Below the pieces are notes generated by a model that saw nothing but the letters and a program-made list of their open reading frames with translations, had not been told where the DNA came from and did no database searches. A stretch of 64,000 bases of DNA. It comes from Auanema rhodensis. Its lineage: Eukaryota; Animalia; Nematoda. The position numbers were made by a program, and so were the translations under genes. Positions within the stretch are counted from its first letter, which is position 1. Every line of letters begins with the position of its first letter. Positions 14,861-23,268 of the stretch are shown piece by piece. The DNA lies in NCBI GenBank assembly GCA_964057225.1, contig OZ059897.1:5456001-5520000 (forward strand). Reading direction: 5' to 3'.

Positions 14861-17800
14861 CTAAGGAGAAGGAGAATCAGTTCGTAAAAACGATGATGAG
14901 AACTGCTCTAAATTTCGGAGCAGTAAAGCGGTTTTTCCTCTGAAAACAACATTATATAATAAATGAATTTTACTTGCTAAATTTACTTGATTGTAGCAAA
15001 GGCTTTCAGAGTTGAGTCCACTTTTTCAATCTTTCTCTTGCCTTTATCTAAATCATCCTTCATTTCTCGGTGGACACCACCAACAGTGGTTCTGAGACCA
15101 TCAAACACTTGATCCATTTCTCTAAAGATAAAGCTTTTTTTCCGATTTGAAAAGCGTCAACGATACCTCACAGCCTGGACTTCACAATGAGAAATATGGG
15201 CAGCAGCAACCTATAGTAAAGTTTTGAGATGTAAAAGGTGATCTGCTGGGGACAAACCTGCTTCATTCTGGCAGCTAAGTGAGATCTAAATTGCTCCTTG
15301 AAGTGCTGCTCTTTAGCACTCGAATTCCAACGTAGTCTTTCCATAGCATACAATCCACCGTAACAGGCTGCACCAACAGCAATAACCTTAACGTTCCGAT
15401 TTTACATAGAACAGAGATAACTAAAAAAATACCCTCCATCCAACAGCTTTATAAACAATTCCACAAGCTACCATCACTCCGATACTACCATTTGCTAAAT
15501 AAGCAGCTGAGCTTAGGACCATTTGAGTCATCACGGCGTTTTCTTCCGCAGCCAAATATACAGCATCGTTAGGATCATCTCGTAAAGCTTTGTGCTGAAA
15601 AATCATGACTACACAGTGAAACACTACCTCAATGAGTAATACCGCTCTCATTGGTGTTAAAAGATTTGTTTGAATAGCGGTAACAGGCTGGCCAGATCTA
15701 TACGCAACAATTCTGCGGATTATCGAGGATAATCCAAACGTAAAACGGAATTCAAGGTCCTCATGAAAATCTCTGGAAGTTGAAAATTATACAAATCGAA
15801 GAAAAAGTTATTCATACTTAACAAGAGCAGGTGCGTCAACACAGATAGAAAACTTGAATGGTGCTCTATAGCGCCACACTTCTTCTAGTTTATGTTGGTA
15901 AGGCTCTGCCAAAATCTTTTTAACAAAATCTAAATCAAGTAAATGGGCTATTGAACCATAACAGGTAATAACATACGGAACATATCATTTTCTAAATTCC
16001 AAATCCTAGACATGAGACCACCTGTGCAACGCGCCTCTAGATCGGCGTTCACGGAATCATTAGTGAATATTGAGAGTGCCTTAAACCAAAACATAGCTTA
16101 TACAATGAAACAATACTGGAATGTACCTCCTTATATTTCTCGATTCCTTCAGAAGAATCCATAAAAGGTTGATTAAATCTATCAATTATTGCCTCGAGTC
16201 TCATAATCTCTTCAGCAAAATCGGCAGATACCTAAACAAAAATTAAAGCGAGATTTATGAGATGATATAAGATAAAAAAAACCTTGAGATGAACTTCCGC
16301 TCTTAAATGCTCAGTTTGCTCTCTGTATGCCTTTTCAAATTGGAAAAAGTTATTTCGACAATCATTAAACAGCTGTGTAGCTGCCTTAAAACAGTATGTG
16401 CTAGCAAATGTTAATATTAGAATACCATCAATCCTTCCTCATATTTAACTTTTTGTTCAGTTACTTTTCCTTGAGCAACATCAACATTGAATCGTATCTT
16501 TTGTATTATTTCTAATGCACGACGATTATGAGCTTCAAACTTTGATAATATAGCGGATCTAACAATAAAGAATATGATGGCTAAAATTTGAAAAGGGATA
16601 CCTCGATATACATTGCTCAAAGTTTTTCTCAAAATTTTCGAATTCCAACAAACGTTCTTTTGAGCCAGCTACTTGATATGCACTTTTGGTGAGACCTTTT
16701 TCTTTTAAACGAGCTTCCAAAACCTAAACAGAAGCATGAACTGGAGAGACATGTAAAATGGCAAACCTCACGAGCAGATACAAAATAAATGCGATTATTG
16801 ACTTCTTTTTCTGTACAAACTTCAAGTTCATTGACTAAAAACTGTCTAAACCTATTTTGATGCTGTTTTTTGACCTAAATAAGTTTATTATATAAAAGAT
16901 TCATGTAATCAATACCTCTTCTACATCTTCCTCCGAGGCACTAGCATCCCATCGATTGTTCAAAATAAAAACATTTGGTTTGCTTAATTTTTTAGAAACA
17001 CGGTAGAAAAAACTCTTCTCCTTTAAAATAAAAAATGCAAAACTTTAAAATATAAAAACTAACAGCTTGAGTAAGAGTCGATTCAGCGTTTAAAACTAAA
17101 ACGAACACATCAGCATCGAGACAATGTTTATCAATCCAACTATCGAACTCGGGCGATAAATCGACACCGGGACTAAACAATAGTTGAAATATTATAATTC
17201 AAAGAAACCTACCTATCAAGCAAAACAACATCATTTTGGAGAAGTCTATTCTCATTACTCTCACTATCACCAATTGGATGAAAAATTCTAGATAAATATT
17301 TTTCTATATTAATGTAAATAGAATTATGCACCTTAAAAGAGAATCTTGTCCCATTTCAGGAATATCTGAGTTTTCGGTGCTCATAGCATGTCCTATCTTT
17401 CCAAGTTCTTTAACATCAATTCGAGATGGATCATCCCCCATTATCATATAACCATTATCATCTCGACAACCTTGAACCTGCAATTACAATGAGTTACATT
17501 AGAACACACAATAATAAATAAACCTGTAGAAAGCAACAAGTGGTATGACCCATTCCTTGGGGTAACACTTTGTTATGAAGCATAGCATTAATAGTAGTAC
17601 TTTTTCCGTTACTTGTCCTACAAGTATAACAATAAAAAAAGAGAAACTATTTTCGTACAACCTGCCAAAGAATACTACTTTCATATTATCTCTTCGAAAA
17701 GTATCCATGATAGTTTGGATAGATTCTTTTAAAACAGTAATTTCAGATTCCTGCTCTTGGGGAATAACATGAGAACTTTCTTCCAAGGAAATATCTATAA

Positions 17801-18074
17801 ATCTATCATGAGCACCTGTTACAGCCTATGGTTCACCTTTATATATACTATTAAGCTCATTAACATGATCGCCTAAATCTGTATAAATTTCGCCCAAAAC
17901 TTTTTTTGCTTCTTTGAATCTTAATAAAGGTTCATCTCCATTAATTCTTCGTGTCGGTTTTCCAGACACTAAAGGAATAAACAATGTTAATAGTTTTATT
18001 TGAATGCAATACTTACAAGTCATATGAGCTCGTACATAATCACCGCTTTGATTTTGTGGCATGTATGCGCTCAT
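14861..18074 (-). CDS. fzo-1: Mitofusin / fuzzy onions GTPase
   Basis: [21 protein letters not shown]-loop, [43 protein letters not shown] region [19 protein letters not shown]-terminus LRTDSPSP*. Confidence 0.95.
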
Positions 18075-18515
18075 ACTTGAGTCATAAACACCTCTAAAAT
18101 AAAAAAAATACTAAAACTGAGTAATATAAATTATGTAAAGCATAAAACTATGGTGAATATGCAGATTAAAAGATAGACAAACAATCAAATATTGTACGTA
18201 ATGTGTATACATTTGAAAATACGCGAACTTCCGTTTTATTGTAAGTTATCAGTTAAAATGAACTTGCTAGATTAGTAAATTGAAAATTTTTATGTTACAA
18301 ATTATTCCTTTTAATTTTTAAAGGGATTAGAGTTTGGGTAATGAAAATAAGCATAAAAACTTTATTGTTTTCGAATTATAAAAATATATTTTTATATTTA
18401 ATGTTTAGCAATGCTTTCCATATAAAAGTCAATTACTAACCCTATATAATTTACAAAACGAAAACAAATACATCGTCTATTCTGAATACAAGCAAAATTA
18501 TAATATATTGATATC

Positions 18516-21463
18516 CTAAGTGGTATCTATTTGAGTGGTACTAGAGCGTTTTTTCTCTTTAATTTTTTTTTGGAACATCTTTGCCATGTTTAGGTCCTCA
18601 CCTTCTATAGTTTTCATATATTCCATTCGTACCTAAGTATAGACATACCATTTAATCAAATAAATTTTCTTACTTTTATTTCTTTGCATAACTCGAAGAT
18701 TTCCATCCATGTATCGACATGTTTAATTCTGTGGTGTAGGGAACTTCTCCATCCTTGTCTTTGCCACACGGGCATCCAGGATTTAAGTGATTTTATTAAA
18801 AAAGTCGAATTTGACCTGATGATAACTAATTTTTCATTTTCTGCTTTAGCCTATCATATATATATAATTAATTAAAATTATCTAACGAAAAAGAACCTTT
18901 CTAAGAATTTCTAATAATTGTAATGGTATAGAGGACTGATGCCACGGTACAAATGTTGGGGAGCAATTAGGTCCCGTCTGAAATTAAAAGATTGAGTGAA
19001 TATATTTCAAAAGTACACACTTTATCATAAATTATTCCTGGCTGAAATTTTGTACCATATTTAAATACACGGGCTCTCAATACTCTAAATTATTGTTGAT
19101 TAAGTTTAACTTTACATTACCACTACCCATCGATATCTAGCTCCTGGTTATCAGTTATATCTTCTAGAGTCCAGCTATACTCCGTGGTATCTTTTCGTGT
19201 GAGTGGAAACGACAATCCTTCTTCGCATAATTCACTTACTATTTTCCAATCCTTGTTGTCATTATTTAAGGCTTCATAGCGGTACCTCACTTCCTAAAAA
19301 AAACATGAAAAAAATAAGCTGATGCCGACAACTTACAAATCCTTTTACATTAACTAAATCTAGTATTCTTTCATAAATAAAATAATTTGGAGCCTGACGT
19401 CCAGAACTAGTGTACCACCTGAACGAGTATTTCATTTAACTTATTCTACGGTCAAACATACTTTTCTCGAAGATATTTCAGAAAATAAGGTGAATTAATA
19501 ACTAAAAGAACGTTTTTTAATTTGCAGTCCACCGCCTGTAATAGGACAGTGATAAATTTTATTATATATGTTCTTACTTGTTTCAAGGCTGTTTCAATTG
19601 CTATTAATTCGGCTCGAAACAAAGTTACTGGATAAAGGGAAAATCGGTGAGGTACATTTCTTCCACATTCCCCGCCTAACCAATACGTACAGTATGATGC
19701 AGAAGCAAAGCCTGTGAAGACCAAGCAAGAATAACTATATTTATGATATTATATACCATTCGCTTCTTTTTCAAATTTTGTTCCAATATAACAAATAGGC
19801 CACTTTTTTTCGGGCATCGTCGTTTCAGCACCATAACAGTCATAGACAGTGTTTAGCTTGATATCTGTTATATCCGAAATTTTAAATATTCAAATAATGT
19901 ATACCTTTCAAGAAATCCGATTTAGTTGAGCTTAAAGCTTCTTTAGATTTGAATGTCTGATCATTTAACAGTAATTCAGTAACATAGTTAGGCTTGCCAT
20001 TTTCTACAGCTGGTACATATTCGAAAGTAACCTATTACAAAATAGCAAACTTTTTAATTGCATATGCTATACCTTTTTATTCTGAATAATATGATGTAAT
20101 TCACGTAGAAGTTCAGCATTTGGTACTTTGTTGCCATTAGTCGTAATATAGTTATCGTTCTCCAACTGTTCAAGATGTTCCTTGAGATGACCGGGAAATT
20201 TGAAATCTGTCTGGATGTGTAACTTCTTTTTTGAAGACTGAAACCAGGACATCATAAATCCGTATATAAAATATTTCCAACCGATTTAATTGCAAGAATC
20301 ATAGCCTGAATCATTGCTCCAACAAACGTGTAAGATTTGTCTAATACTTTCAAGCAGTTGCGACTATCGTTTTCTCCAAAATAAATGCCTAATTTAGAGA
20401 CTCTTTCTCCTCTCTTATTAGAATAAGAATAACCCGTACAGTGTGCTATGTCAGTACTGCAAACATATACCAATAAATAAGAATTTGTCTAAGCTGTAAT
20501 ACTTGGATCCTCGACTATGACCAAGGAAACATCGAGATATTCTGATAGCGTGTGCAGTTTGAAAATTCAACGTTGAAAACATCTCGTGTCATGGAACTAA
20601 AAAACAATGAACACGTTCAGGTTGACAAAATTTACAGAAGTATTGCATTGTTGGAACTAGAGTAAATTATAAAGTAAGAAGATCAATAATTTATATCTTT
20701 ATAACCGTCGAAAACAATTATCTAGCTTTTCACGGAAGTCCGATTCAGCGCAACTTTTCTTCACATCATTTTCCAGAGTTTTTAATTCTAGCCCATGATA
20801 CTTGAGAATATCATCAGATAACAACTGGAGATCACCCTGAGAAAAAATGATGCGGCTTTTCAACGTTAGTTAAATACCATTAGTTGTTTCGAATCATCCG
20901 CATTAACACAGGATTGAATTATATCCAAAGATTTTTTCTCCTTTTTCGGAGTGAAGAGCCCCTTGCCAGTTTTGACTACGATATCATTACTTGAATATAC
21001 AACCACAGACCTTTCCTTATAAAATATACCCTTAAGTTCATATTTTTAAAATATATATCAATAAAAACTAACTAGTACAAAGGCATATAACACAGCAGAA
21101 ACTTCTGCTGAGTAAAAACTGTATGACTCGAGATCGATTCTCAAGTTTCTAAAATTCACGAGATGAAATCTTTTATCCTGAGCTTACCTCTGAGGATATT
21201 TAGGCCAAACCAATAATATAGCAGGACTTGGGTTTTTCCTGGTAACTACAAAAATTGAAGGTGCCCTAGGTGAGCGGATCAAACAACGAAAGAATCACAA
21301 TATTCAACTTTCCGCGAATTCTACTTTGAAGAAATGTTCTTTTAACATCATTGCTAGGTTTCTCATTTTGCACAATCTTAGTTAAATGAGCCCAAGCTTT
21401 TTCAATGGTTTCTTTTGAGTGACCAGGTCCTACTGTACAACGTCTAACAAATGTGAGAAACAT
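18516..21463 (-). CDS. Protein with four tandem, catalytically degenerate RNase H1-like domains; possible N-terminal mitochondrial presequence
   Basis: Four repeats of the RNase H1 pattern (G-x-Y/W-G..N, AE/L-x-A, V-x-I-x-[TS]-[DN]-S, W..NG..V.N.E/D): LVWPKYPQRN..SAEVSAV..VVVYSSN; LGIYFGENDSRN..HIQTDF..NGNKVPNAELL; YCTYWLG..FRAELIAIETAL..LLVINSPY; IIRSNSTFLIKSLKSWMPVWQRQGW. A GTTTAG acceptor lies 2 nt before the ATG. Confidence 0.75.
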
Positions 21464-21668
21464 CGCTAAACTACTTATAATATAATTCTTACAAAAGGTT
21501 TTGAAAGCTATTTAAGATCGATAAAGGGATTCCAATTACCTCAGAGAAACTTCATAAGAAAAAGAAAAAAAAAGCAAAATATTTTTAATCATAAAACACC
21601 AAATCAGAACCACAATGAAAAAAGATATCTTAACTTTGGAAACAATCTTACATATCAGTCCAAATCAA

Positions 21669-22723
21669 TTATCGATACATTTCCGCACCTTTTCTTGCTA
21701 ATGCATCTGCTTCTTCATTACCAGTAATACCACAATGTGCTTTCACCTTTTCAAATTTTACCTGAATATAAAAGATAAGTACTGTAAAGCAAAAGAAAAC
21801 GCACATCAATTGTTTTTCTCAGTTCTTTAATTTGAACAAGTAGCTCTTTGTTTTTAACGTCACCTTTATCAGTTTTCCAGCCATTTCTACTCAATAAGCT
21901 ACAAATCTAATTTTGAATTTTAGCAAACTTTTCCCATTTATTTATCCAAATATCACAAGAATTAATGCACAATTGAGAATCGGTGCAAACAACAACACTC
22001 TTAAACTCATCCTTTTTAGCCTAAAAATTAAGTTTCAAATAATATTCATAGTGTTCATCACCTGCTCTATGGCTTTAATCACTGCTAGGAGTTCTCCTCT
22101 ATTATTGGTAGCGGCACCATCTACTGGACCACATGAATTATTTGGATGGTCTGGTCCCCAATATACACCCCATCCAGCCTATTGAGTATTTAATCCGTTA
22201 ATACTTATGAAAAATGAAACTTTTGCTCCTTTTTTTCCGTTTGAAGAACAGGCTCCGTCGGTATAAACAACAGCACAATCATTGGTTGACTCCCTAAATG
22301 AAATAAATAATACAATATATGATAAAGAGTTTACAGTAGAGAACGCTTGATTTCATGTTTGTTTGGTGAGCTTGAATGTACCCTTTTACGCTGATTAATT
22401 GCTGAAAAATGAATAAGTTGGAAACTTCTAAGCTAGTTCTCACAATTCGATGTACAGGTTTTGTGAGATGTATCTGTATCTTTATGTAATTTTATAAAAG
22501 CATCTGCTTCCTCAATAGTGGTGAACTTTTTGAATCTGAATATTTCACGCAACTTATATTTGAATAATTAGCCTATCTGGCAAAAACAAAATTCATATTT
22601 TAACAACAACTAATTTTACCTAGGACCTGAGAAACCATCAACCTGTTTCTTGCATTCAAGCCATGTATTATACACCCCAACATTTTTTCCTCTAGCAACA
22701 GCATAAAAAGCTCTATTTCCCAT
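21669..22723 (-). CDS. rnh-1.0: Ribonuclease H1 with an N-terminal hybrid-binding domain
   Basis: HBD FYAVARGKNVGVYNTWLECKKQVDGF..FKKF. Catalytic motifs VYTDGACSSNG, TNNRGELLA, VCTDSQ and AHCGITGNEEADALA (complete D-E-D-D plus His). Confidence 0.93.
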
Positions 22724-23268
22724 GAGGTATACGACTTTTTGAGCTGAAATTTAAAGAATTGCATATAATTTTTAAAAAAATGCTTTTAGAAAGCATTTTC
22801 AGATGTTCAGTACAGTAAGAATAGAATATTGTTTTTGGAGCACTACTCCAACATATTTATACAGTATGAAAAAAGGAGGAAGAAATGCATTAAAAAATTT
22901 TCGGAGGTTTATAAAAATCATAAGAAAAAAATATAATTTGTTACTTCTTGAAATAAAGTAGAATAAGCGAGATAGAAATCTTGTAAAGAACTCAAGTTCA
23001 CATAAACATAAAAACTTTTATTTAGTACAAACGCATTAAAACAGTATGCTTTTCTAATTGAACCCCTTGCACGATGAAAGTGATTGAAAATTTTGTTTAA
23101 AAGGCCAAGTTCTATTAAAAGCAAGAACTCATAACTAAAGCTCTTATCAATATCACGGTTATCTATAGACTTTGGAGTATTGTACATAGCTTAGAAGATT
23201 TATCGAACAAAATTAAAAGGGGAATATATACAAATATAATTATACCAGAGCATGTATGAAACGAGTAA

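Follow-up and report, generated by a model that had tools for sequence, protein, structure and literature searches.

The active RNase H1 gene of the window (the whole 64,000-nt stretch of DNA analyzed here) has two expressed genes, A and B, downstream of it, not one. By sequence comparison, gene B consists of three RNase H1-type domains with the catalytic residues lost in all three; gene A, as far as its sequence indicates, is a conserved nematode-specific protein whose likeness to RNase H is not significant. We consider it reasonably probable that these two genes behind RNase H1 comprise a conserved gene A and a gene B that is a constrained three-domain pseudo-RNase H1, a non-cleaving binder or scaffold, with both products mitochondrial. 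Free-standing natural pseudo-enzymes derived from RNase H1 are little known, and the A-B family is expressed, selectively constrained, and probably ancestrally co-transcribed with the active enzyme. The features are as follows.

21669..22723, minus strand: active RNase H1 gene, 239 aa, 8 exons (introns from RNA contigs), with hybrid-binding and catalytic domains
21464..21668, minus strand: RNase H1-A spacer, 205 nt (RNase H1 contigs end at 21571-21599; the gene A contig starts at 21527)
21463-20699, minus strand: gene A, 199 aa (RNA contig with joints and bin depths; translation)
21463-21309, 21265-21188, 21148-21073, 21030-20878, 20836-20699, minus strand: gene A exons, from the RNA contig
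20701-20699, minus strand: gene A stop codon, TAA
20597..20698, minus strand: A-B spacer, 102 nt, from the gene A stop to the 3′ splice acceptor of the gene B transcript
18516..20582, minus strand: gene B, 516 aa, 13 exons (spliced RNA contig of 1637-1653 nt in all four runs)
20582-20503, 20456-20282, 20237-20073, 20031-19905, 19864-19757, 19711-19578, 19535-19462, minus strand: gene B exons 1-7
19418-19337, 19293-19127, 19084-19021, 18977-18897, 18850-18674, 18632-18516, minus strand: gene B exons 8-13
20503..20582, minus strand: gene B exon 1, presequence-like N-terminus
19905..20456, minus strand: gene B domain 1, pseudo-RNase H1, about aa 27-165
19127..19864, minus strand: gene B domain 2, pseudo-RNase H1, about aa 196-345
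18516..19084, minus strand: gene B domain 3, pseudo-RNase H1, about aa 366-505
15168..18074, minus strand: mitofusin (fzo-like) gene (Pfam Fzo_mitofusin, E 4.6e-12 and 3.7e-7, two exons)

Transcript structures were taken from assembled spliced RNA contigs of four runs of a single study. In all four runs, two transcripts lie downstream of RNase H1, spanning 21527-20709 (gene A) and about 20598-18440 (gene B), and no contig joins them. The RNA check of exons proposed in the initial annotation therefore bore out expression and splicing but gave two transcripts instead of one. Introns across the region are GT..AG and 39-46 nt long, those of gene B having been checked. The gene A contig ends 8 nt short of the stop codon in every run, and the gene B 3′ UTR extends to about 18430-18446. 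In all four runs the gene B contig opens near 20598 with "AG" plus exon, as expected for a mixture of spliced leaders. The acceptor there is TTTTTTAG, with its AG at 20598-20597, and an in-frame TGA (20591-20589) lies upstream of the gene B ATG. We regard the acceptor at 20597 as probably a trans-splice site for the gene B mRNA, which would then be made separately by trans-splicing.

The distance of 205 nt from the RNase H1 stop codon (21671-21669) to the gene A ATG at 21463 is exactly as first described. With both genes on the strand of RNase H1, spacers of 205 and about 102 nt, and a gene B contig starting at the acceptor 20597, the layout is that of an SL2-type operon. Behind the active RNase H1, genes A and B are lined up in one orientation as in an operon, and co-transcription with it is probable. 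In 2002, Arudchandran et al. reportedly described a dicistronic SL2-type operon of C. elegans in which a gene carrying hybrid-binding domains precedes rnh-1.0. None of the literature consulted mentions downstream genes A and B.

The motifs quoted in the initial annotation are all present in the translation at their minus-strand places: the set of gene A, those of gene B (HCTG / GAMI / QTDF in domain 1, CYIG / RAEL / VINS / KIVS in domain 2, RVFK / LQL / RSNS in domain 3), WMPVWQRQGW, and MFLTFVRRC. Its proposal of four RNase H1 domains held, by blastp and hhalign, for its domains 2 to 4, which are gene B domains 1 to 3, but not for its domain 1, now gene A, which gave no significant signal. 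In blastp comparisons with the catalytic domain of the neighboring RNase H1, the three gene B domains matched with E values of 3e-9, 2e-4 (domain 1), and 7e-3. Alignment to RNase H with hhalign, window sequence included, gave 95.9% (E 5.5e-9), 96.9%, and 99.1% for domains 1, 2, and 3, respectively. A single 59-aa exon of domain 3 matched RNase HI/H1 structures by PDB phmmer (E 4e-5); single exons of domains 1 and 2 yielded no match in the same search. Gene B orthologues scored 43-61 bits against Pfam RNase_H (PF00075; cut-off 25.8), with 2-3 stretches per protein, and the raw open reading frame pieces of the window gave one weak RNase_H match (E 0.11) because the exons are too short.

Structures were modeled with AF2 on the Auanema orthologue of gene B, which stands in for the window's spliced protein, at pLDDT 72.5 and 85. 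Foldseek aligned the model with human RNase H1 at TM 0.69-0.80. The gene B fold shows the RNase H succession of three strands, helix A, strand 4, helices B-D, strand 5, and helix E, and the strand and helix order of domain 1 is seen in the model. Together with hhalign, the structure check found three of the expected RNase H folds, those of gene B. All three domains are homologous to, and share the fold of, the human RNASEH1 catalytic domain (PDB 2QK9) and the neighboring RNase H1.

As the initial annotation had claimed, no unit retains the full D-E-D-D tetrad (E. coli D10, E48, D70, and D134); a residue table of nine sequences shows it complete in no gene B domain. D10 is missing from all three domains in 9/9 sequences. 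E48 varies in domain 2 and has been lost from the other two domains, D70 survives only in domain 1 and, among the orthologues, in domain 3, and D134 is missing or variable. In domain 1, Thr stands in place of D10 and Met in place of E48; QTDF preserves D70, and His124 and D134 are gone. Domain 2 has Gly for D10 and Asn for D70 (VINS); its E48 is present in the window (RAEL) and varies in orthologues, and its helix A (FP.T.FRA.L..IE) is the most conserved block. Domain 3 has Tyr for D10 and Ile for E48, and its D70 position is Asn in the window (RSNS) and Asp in clade V orthologues.

The basic protrusion attributed to the last domain is indeed kept. It lies in gene B domain 3 (W..W.R.GWR..LH..I; WMPVWQRQGWRSSLHH in the window), is absent from domains 1 and 2, and is nearly invariant in orthologues, where W, RNGWRN, K, and I do not vary. 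The linker motif KD..EY is likewise invariant in the orthologue alignment. The phosphate-binding pocket of RNase H1 and most of its RNA-contacting residues are not kept in domain 3, which leaves hybrid specificity uncertain. Agreeing with the earlier reading, neither gene B orthologues nor the precomputed annotations of A and B contain a match to Cauli_VI, the hybrid-binding domain.

Gene A carries the motifs FVVT / SAEV / YSSN in its core. No match to the neighboring RNase H1 was found by blastp, and none to Pfam or, with single exons, to PDB structures by phmmer; its orthologues have no Pfam family recorded in their annotations, and the longest exon of Auanema gene A gave no usable match in the ESM Atlas. 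Against the RNase H profile, hhalign returned probabilities of 2-4% (P 0.01-0.03 before correction for four comparisons), in an alignment that places strand 1, helix A, and strand 4 in the correct register.

The N-termini of both proteins have the composition of mitochondrial presequences, for which 15-45 leading residues free of Asp and Glu and rich in Arg and Ser/Thr were taken as the mark. By composition count, gene B in the window begins with 28 acid-free residues, among them 3 Arg and 7 Ser/Thr; in orthologues the acid-free run reaches 42 residues and includes 3-6 Arg. The start of gene A (MFLTFVRRC...), which had been singled out as a possible presequence, is acid-free for 16-22 residues across sequences by the same count. 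Gene B of C. tropicalis and gene A of C. angaria lack such N-termini, which may reflect start-codon errors. Judging from these compositions, both proteins probably go to mitochondria, and they would be imported through their acid-free, Arg/Ser-rich N-termini.

Orthologues were found in Caenorhabditis (at least 10 species), Auanema, Gnathostoma, and six genera that are strongylid or related; carriers include Nippostrongylus, Ancylostoma, Ostertagia, and Angiostrongylus, and both parasitic and free-living nematodes are represented. As had been anticipated, they stand in the records unnamed, as "hypothetical" or "RNase H type-1 domain-containing" proteins. Gene B is 47% identical over its full length to the Auanema protein (P0005) and about 33% identical to Caenorhabditis orthologues, which together with the others are 513-550 aa long. 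Gene A is 39% identical to its Auanema orthologue, and its orthologues (199-228 aa) are separate genes at six loci (L001, L002, L003, L004, L005, and L006). Annotations keep the two genes apart, with 97-117 nt between them, in Auanema, C. remanei, C. bovis, C. angaria, and C. brenneri; in Nippostrongylus, too, they are neighboring but distinct genes. The orthologue search found no C. elegans orthologue; this absence, if real, could explain why the family has not been studied, and in that case the systems for testing it are C. briggsae, C. remanei, or Auanema. Searching the literature for this family, for dead RNase H domains in tandem, or for a link to the mitoribosome turned up nothing on these genes.

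Adjacency of A and B is conserved, and the place behind RNase H1 is ancestral. In the window the neighborhood with the active RNase H1 described earlier is present and co-transcription is probable, but in C. remanei, C. brenneri, and C. nigoni the pair does not lie beside RNase H1 (about 6-8 kb of upstream flank), so an obligatory enzyme/pseudo-enzyme pairing is unlikely. Constraint was measured from within-species pairs instead of as between-species dN/dS. The pN/pS of gene B is 0.146 in C. remanei (19 synonymous and 10 nonsynonymous differences) and 0.129 in C. brenneri (17 and 8, respectively), which indicates purifying selection and a conserved pseudo-enzyme, not a decaying copy; the selection check suggested beforehand thus came out against a pseudogene. 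The within-species comparison of gene A showed zero differences. The tetrad of gene B would have been lost before the split of clade V and Spirurina, with purifying selection since.

Single substitutions at D10, E48, or D70 abolish the activity of E. coli and human RNase H. The gene B product is predicted to be unable to cleave, and activity through a noncanonical or inter-domain composite site is very unlikely: D70 is kept in domains 1 and 3 and Glu occupies E48 of domain 2 in some species, but D10 is missing everywhere and E48 and D134 are missing or variable. That the region holds decaying RNase H1 duplicates is scarcely credible, even with the catalytic residues lost and divergence as fast as 30-47% identity between genera, since reading frames are intact, exon-level structure is conserved across species, transcripts are spliced, pN/pS is low, and the family is distributed over Rhabditina and Spirurina. 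The single spliced, internally quadruplicated gene of the initial annotation is contradicted by the RNA contigs and by the annotations of five other species, and we hold it to be highly improbable. The four motif sets do share a strand, the gap between the two parts is just about 100 nt, and a GT at 20705 could in principle be spliced to the acceptor at 20597; this sole candidate A-to-B cis-splice is, however, out of frame and meets a stop after 27 codons. Against one gene stand also the contigs left unjoined in 4/4 runs, the TGA before the gene B ATG, the orthologue lengths, the separate gene A of the five species, and the fact that a protein of about 720 aa occurs in 0 of 138 representatives.

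More room remains for gene A as a fourth, extremely degenerate RNase H-like domain encoded as its own polypeptide, a possible but doubtful reading in which the cassette would comprise four RNase H folds, possibly in an A-B complex. Gene A always directly precedes gene B, and its hhalign score of 20.9-22.0 exceeds the 12.5 ± 2.0 (maximum, 18.8) of 120 column shuffles, with the register correct. Column shuffling is a lenient control, however, the profile probability and uncorrected P values are those given above, blastp, Pfam, and PDB gave no match, and the Glu that falls on the E48-like position gives way to Asp in C. bovis and to Gln in Nippostrongylus. Somewhat less likely is that gene B is a pure protein scaffold without nucleic-acid contact, perhaps a subunit of a mitochondrial complex, its RNase H folds co-opted for structure as in the retroviral reverse transcriptase (RT) connection subdomain or the RNase H-like domain of Prp8. 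Model domains 1 and 2 align with the HIV-1 RT connection and RNase H domains, most substrate-contact residues are replaced, and the KD..EY linker is invariant. Its most conserved surface element, however, is the basic protrusion, the DNA-binding element of RNase H1, and most species still have D70 in domains 1 and 3.

Our preferred reading is that gene B acts as a noncatalytic nucleic-acid binder or scaffold, with an RNA:DNA hybrid or a DNA strand the most plausible ligand. Binding would rely on the domain 3 basic protrusion together with the domain 2 helix A, and gene A may be the partner of gene B. If gene B binds hybrids uncut, the engineered dead RNase H1 probes would have a natural counterpart, and the protein would offer a handle on the management of RNA:DNA hybrids in nematode mitochondria. 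A more specific and rather improbable extension is that A and B form a nematode-specific mitochondrial complex in which the three dead domains clamp RNA:DNA hybrids (mtDNA replication primers or R-loops), shielding them from RNase H1 or passing them to it. Were this true, the complex would be a dedicated natural "anti-RNase H" or hybrid reader that reuses the fold of the enzyme and was at first expressed together with it from one operon.

Eukaryotic RNase H1 shares the basic protrusion (W..W..NGW) with gene B domain 3, and the mitochondrial isoform of mammalian RNase H1 has a presequence, which the N-terminus of gene B resembles. Unlike these enzymes, gene B lacks both the hybrid-binding domain and the D-E-D-D tetrad, carries three domains per chain, and does not conserve the phosphate-pocket residues. 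An engineered, catalytically dead RNase H1 (D210N) serves as an R-loop probe (PMC8266564). This probe, which binds hybrid and cannot cut, may be taken as a working analogy for gene B, but it has one substitution and an intact binding surface and hybrid-binding domain, whereas many contact residues are lost in gene B and its binding is putative. The RT connection subdomain and the Prp8 RNase H-like domain are RNase H folds without catalytic residues that make scaffold or nucleic-acid contacts; they are parts of polymerase or spliceosome proteins and have no detectable specific relationship to gene B. Three proteins from metagenome or run assemblies (P0003, P0006, and P0026; about 490-540 aa) have three RNase H type 1 domains with degenerate copies, as in gene B. 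By motif reading, one domain in each keeps all catalytic motifs (Pfam, 234-338 bits), whereas all three are dead in nematode gene B, with the active enzyme encoded upstream by a gene of its own.

The active RNase H1 itself carries VYTDG / NRGEL / CTDS / NEEAD in translation and a hybrid-binding domain (Pfam Cauli_VI, E 4.6e-14); one short exon matches Pfam RNase_H at E 5.6e-4 and 20.5 bits, below the cut-off of 25.8. The gene found ahead of rnh-1.0 in the C. elegans operon, with hybrid-binding domains only, also lies ahead of RNase H1 in Auanema, C. bovis, C. angaria, and Nippostrongylus and appears absent from this window. The flanking genes had been named rnh-1.0 and fzo-1; their identities as an RNase H1 with hybrid-binding domain and, by Pfam, a mitofusin stand, but the names are analogies, the window not being C. 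elegans. The mitofusin gene lies downstream on the same strand, outside the cassette, and is noted as context.

Genes A and B are two expressed genes. The RNA contigs came from one study (four runs) and account for roughly half of the words sampled from the stretch; aligned to it, they lack GT..AG introns of 39-46 nt on the minus strand and therefore represent RNA. Besides those of the RNase H1 gene, there are two contigs, one for gene A and one for gene B, which are unjoined in all four runs. Gene models for A and B were built from the contig splice joints.

Features of the locus
22723 (ATG) to 21671-21669 (stop), minus strand: canonical RNase H1 gene, upstream of gene A
21527 to about 20709, minus strand: gene A RNA contig
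21463-20699, minus strand: gene A, 5 exons, 199 aa, TAA at 20701-20699
About 20598 to 18430-18446, minus strand: gene B RNA contig
20582-18516, minus strand: gene B, 13 exons, 516 aa

The RNA bore out splicing and transcription but not a single transcript. The initial annotation had proposed one spliced gene with four RNase H1 units, which is contradicted by the unjoined contigs, by an in-frame TGA (20591-20589) upstream of the gene B ATG, by the sole candidate A-to-B cis-splice (GT at 20705 to the gene B acceptor), which is out of frame and meets a stop after 27 codons, and by separate annotations elsewhere. The A and B orthologues lie 97-117 nt apart and are annotated separately in Auanema sp. 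JU1783, C. remanei, C. bovis, C. angaria, and C. brenneri, and are likewise separate in the Nippostrongylus annotation. Gene A orthologues in those five species are 199-228 aa long. Gene B orthologues are 513-550 aa, and no fused A-B protein of ~720 aa occurs among 138 representatives. The contigs, frame, annotations, and orthologue sizes therefore indicate two genes, with one and three units.

The first bases of the gene B contig are the AG of the acceptor TTTTTTAG (20598-20597), and exon sequence follows. All nematode spliced leaders end in AG, and several such leaders would split the assembly graph exactly there, which may explain the break. Genes A and B are probably expressed as an operon with trans-splicing. 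The gene A contig ends at ~20709 in all four runs (contig size and bin depths), 8 nt short of the stop codon; a poly(A) site is not expected there, and 20705 could be a minor donor, yet one out of frame with gene B. All 23 introns defined at 18500-22800 are very short (39-46 nt), shorter than the usual C. elegans short-intron class and similar to those of the Auanema sp. JU1783 locus (41-54 nt).

Sequence comparison and modeling identify three RNase H1-type domains in gene B. Searched by blastp against the neighboring catalytic domain, gene B gives three separate alignments (residues 358-485, E 3e-9; 30-148, E 2e-4; 221-330, E 7e-3). A 59-aa exon of its last domain matches RNase HI/H1 structures (E 4e-5), and the same query matched 138 proteins in a 1.8-billion-protein library. 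Six full-length orthologues score 43-61 bits against Pfam RNase_H (cut-off 25.8), in 2-3 stretches apiece. For each domain, a profile built from the window and eight orthologous sequences was aligned against one of 32 canonical RNases HI and the neighboring domain; the probabilities were 95.9% (E 5.5e-9), 96.9% (E 1.4e-10), and 99.1% (E 3.8e-19) for domains 1 to 3. Modeling the Auanema orthologue with AlphaFold2 (7-sequence alignment, pLDDT 72.5) gave the RNase H element order three times, and Foldseek matched the model with the catalytic domain of human RNase H1 at TM 0.69-0.80 by target. Of the four RNase H folds anticipated, three were recovered in gene B, while the gene A unit has no significant RNase H match.

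Catalytic positions (E. coli numbering) in gene B and its orthologues
D10: domain 1, Thr (invariant); domain 2, Gly/Ala/Arg; domain 3, Thr/Tyr/His/Arg
E48: domain 1, Met/Ile; domain 2, variable (Glu, Asp, Gln, Ile, Thr); domain 3, Ile/Thr/Leu
D70: domain 1, kept (invariant); domain 2, variable; domain 3, kept in clade V orthologues (Asn in the window and in Gnathostoma)
His124: lost in domains 1, 2, and 3
D134: lost in domains 1, 2, and 3

D10, E48, and D70 are each needed for RNase H activity. Because this set is incomplete in every domain, all three are predicted to be catalytically inactive, and probably already were in the common ancestor; the dead sites proposed initially agree with the absence of a complete D-E-D-D set from each. 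Gene B encodes a selectively constrained protein of three pseudo-RNase H1 domains. Its ORF and exon structure were mapped exactly in nine loci, and a selection estimate, in which a ratio near 1 would indicate a pseudogene, gave within-species pN/pS of 0.146 in C. remanei (19 synonymous, 10 non-synonymous differences) and 0.129 in C. brenneri (17 and 8). In comparisons across species, dS has reached saturation, with dN at 0.16-0.24. Gene B shares 47% identity with the Auanema protein and 30-35% with Caenorhabditis and Nippostrongylus proteins.

The predicted unannotated orthologues were found across Caenorhabditis, Auanema, strongylids, and Gnathostoma. The family spans at least ten Caenorhabditis species (those returned include C. 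briggsae, nigoni, tropicalis, brenneri, japonica, bovis, angaria, auriculariae, and sp. 36), Auanema, Nippostrongylus, Ancylostoma, Ostertagia, Heterorhabditis, Angiostrongylus, and Cylicocyclus, with a 641-aa form in Gnathostoma (Spirurina). Their RNase H domain is already flagged in databases, under names that are only "hypothetical" or "RNase H type-1 domain-containing protein". No C. elegans orthologue was returned by a protein search restricted by length window and word index, a lead rather than proof of absence; the gene may be lost or strongly altered there. The Ancylostoma ceylanicum annotation (locus L007, 7023-7922 and 10001-13126) divides gene B between two genes, one of 206 aa with domain 1 and one of 368 aa with domains 2-3, and several strongylid entries (194-377 aa) resemble similar fragments.

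Gene A is conserved (39% identity to Auanema, 25-32% to Caenorhabditis) and always directly upstream of gene B, of which it is probably a partner. Gene A, whose exons each encode at most 51 aa, has no Pfam, blastp, or PDB match, and no Pfam family is recorded in the five species. Profile comparison places its motifs in the RNase H register claimed for this unit (IFVV as strand 1, YSAEV as helix A, VVVYSSN as strand 4), but the homology is not significant (probability just 2-4%, P 0.01-0.03). None of 120 column shuffles (12.5 ± 2.0, maximum 18.8) reached its score of 20.9, but this control is lenient. A fourth RNase H fold is thus possible, though less likely than not.

All motifs quoted initially were located on the minus strand, the RNase H1 stop lies exactly 205 nt from the next ATG (21463), and a mitofusin gene follows gene B on the same strand (Pfam Fzo_mitofusin, E 4.6e-12). 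Both neighbors keep their assigned identities, but the names rnh-1.0 and fzo-1 apply by analogy only, the window not being C. elegans. The upstream RNase H1 has a hybrid-binding domain (HBD) right at its N-terminal start (Pfam Cauli_VI, E 4.6e-14); its RNase_H match is weak (one short exon, E 5.6e-4, 20.5 bits, below the 25.8 cut-off), and the translated catalytic domain contains VYTDG, NRGEL, CTDS, and NEEAD.

A-B adjacency is universal, and the pair forms a conserved cassette behind RNase H1. The order Snf7-family gene, HBD-only gene, RNase H1, A, B is common to Auanema, C. bovis, and C. angaria, and from the HBD-only gene onward to Nippostrongylus and Ancylostoma; in C. remanei, C. brenneri, and C. 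nigoni, the upstream flanks examined hold no RNase H1. The proposed linkage is therefore ancestral but dispensable. In the window, Snf7 also lies upstream of RNase H1, only ~550 nt away (22724-23268); one ORF there had no Pfam match, and the HBD-only gene seems absent. Elsewhere, a ~210-aa gene with only Cauli_VI domains occupies this interval (orthologous loci L001, 4689-5599; L004, 4241-5200; L005, 4023-5085). Directly upstream of A-B, C. remanei (L002, 1-6378) has three extra genes (496-695 aa) with faint RNase_H/RVT_3 matches, only ~25% identical to gene B domain 1; in C. nigoni (L008, 3359-5738), the annotation fuses gene A into a comparable upstream gene (tblastn).

The suggested mitochondrial presequence is compatible with N-terminal composition: gene B begins with 28 residues without Asp/Glu (3 Arg, 7 Ser/Thr) in the window and up to 42 (3-6 Arg) in orthologues, and gene A with 16-22. 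Both products are probably imported into mitochondria.

The most conserved gene B blocks are domain 2 helix A (FP.T.FRA.L..IE..L..A), a linker motif (KD..EY), and the domain 3 basic protrusion (W.RNGWRN..K.I), noted initially in the last of the four units. The basic protrusion is a DNA-binding element of RNase H1, and through it gene B might act as a non-catalytic nucleic-acid binder. The main rival is a pure protein scaffold; the phosphate-pocket and most RNA-contact positions of RNase H1 are not retained. Nucleic-acid binding without cleavage, which we infer for gene B, would be analogous to D210N RNase H1 probes (PMC8266564).

A literature search returned no description of the gene B family, its three-fold dead architecture, partner gene A, or the operon context. 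Three proteins from metagenome or run assemblies (P0003, P0006, P0026) likewise have three RNase H domains, but judged by motifs one of these has the full catalytic set and the other two are degenerate, whereas all three are dead in gene B; as such tandem proteins are known elsewhere, the family is no new category. The best matches of the domain 3 exon are P0001 (1181 aa) and P0002 (1903 aa), from ~60-kb ENA metagenome contigs (E about 1e-26, 19 matched stretches each). P0001 has no Pfam RNase_H match at E 0.01 or better, and both look like extended arrays of the RNase H basic-protrusion segment.
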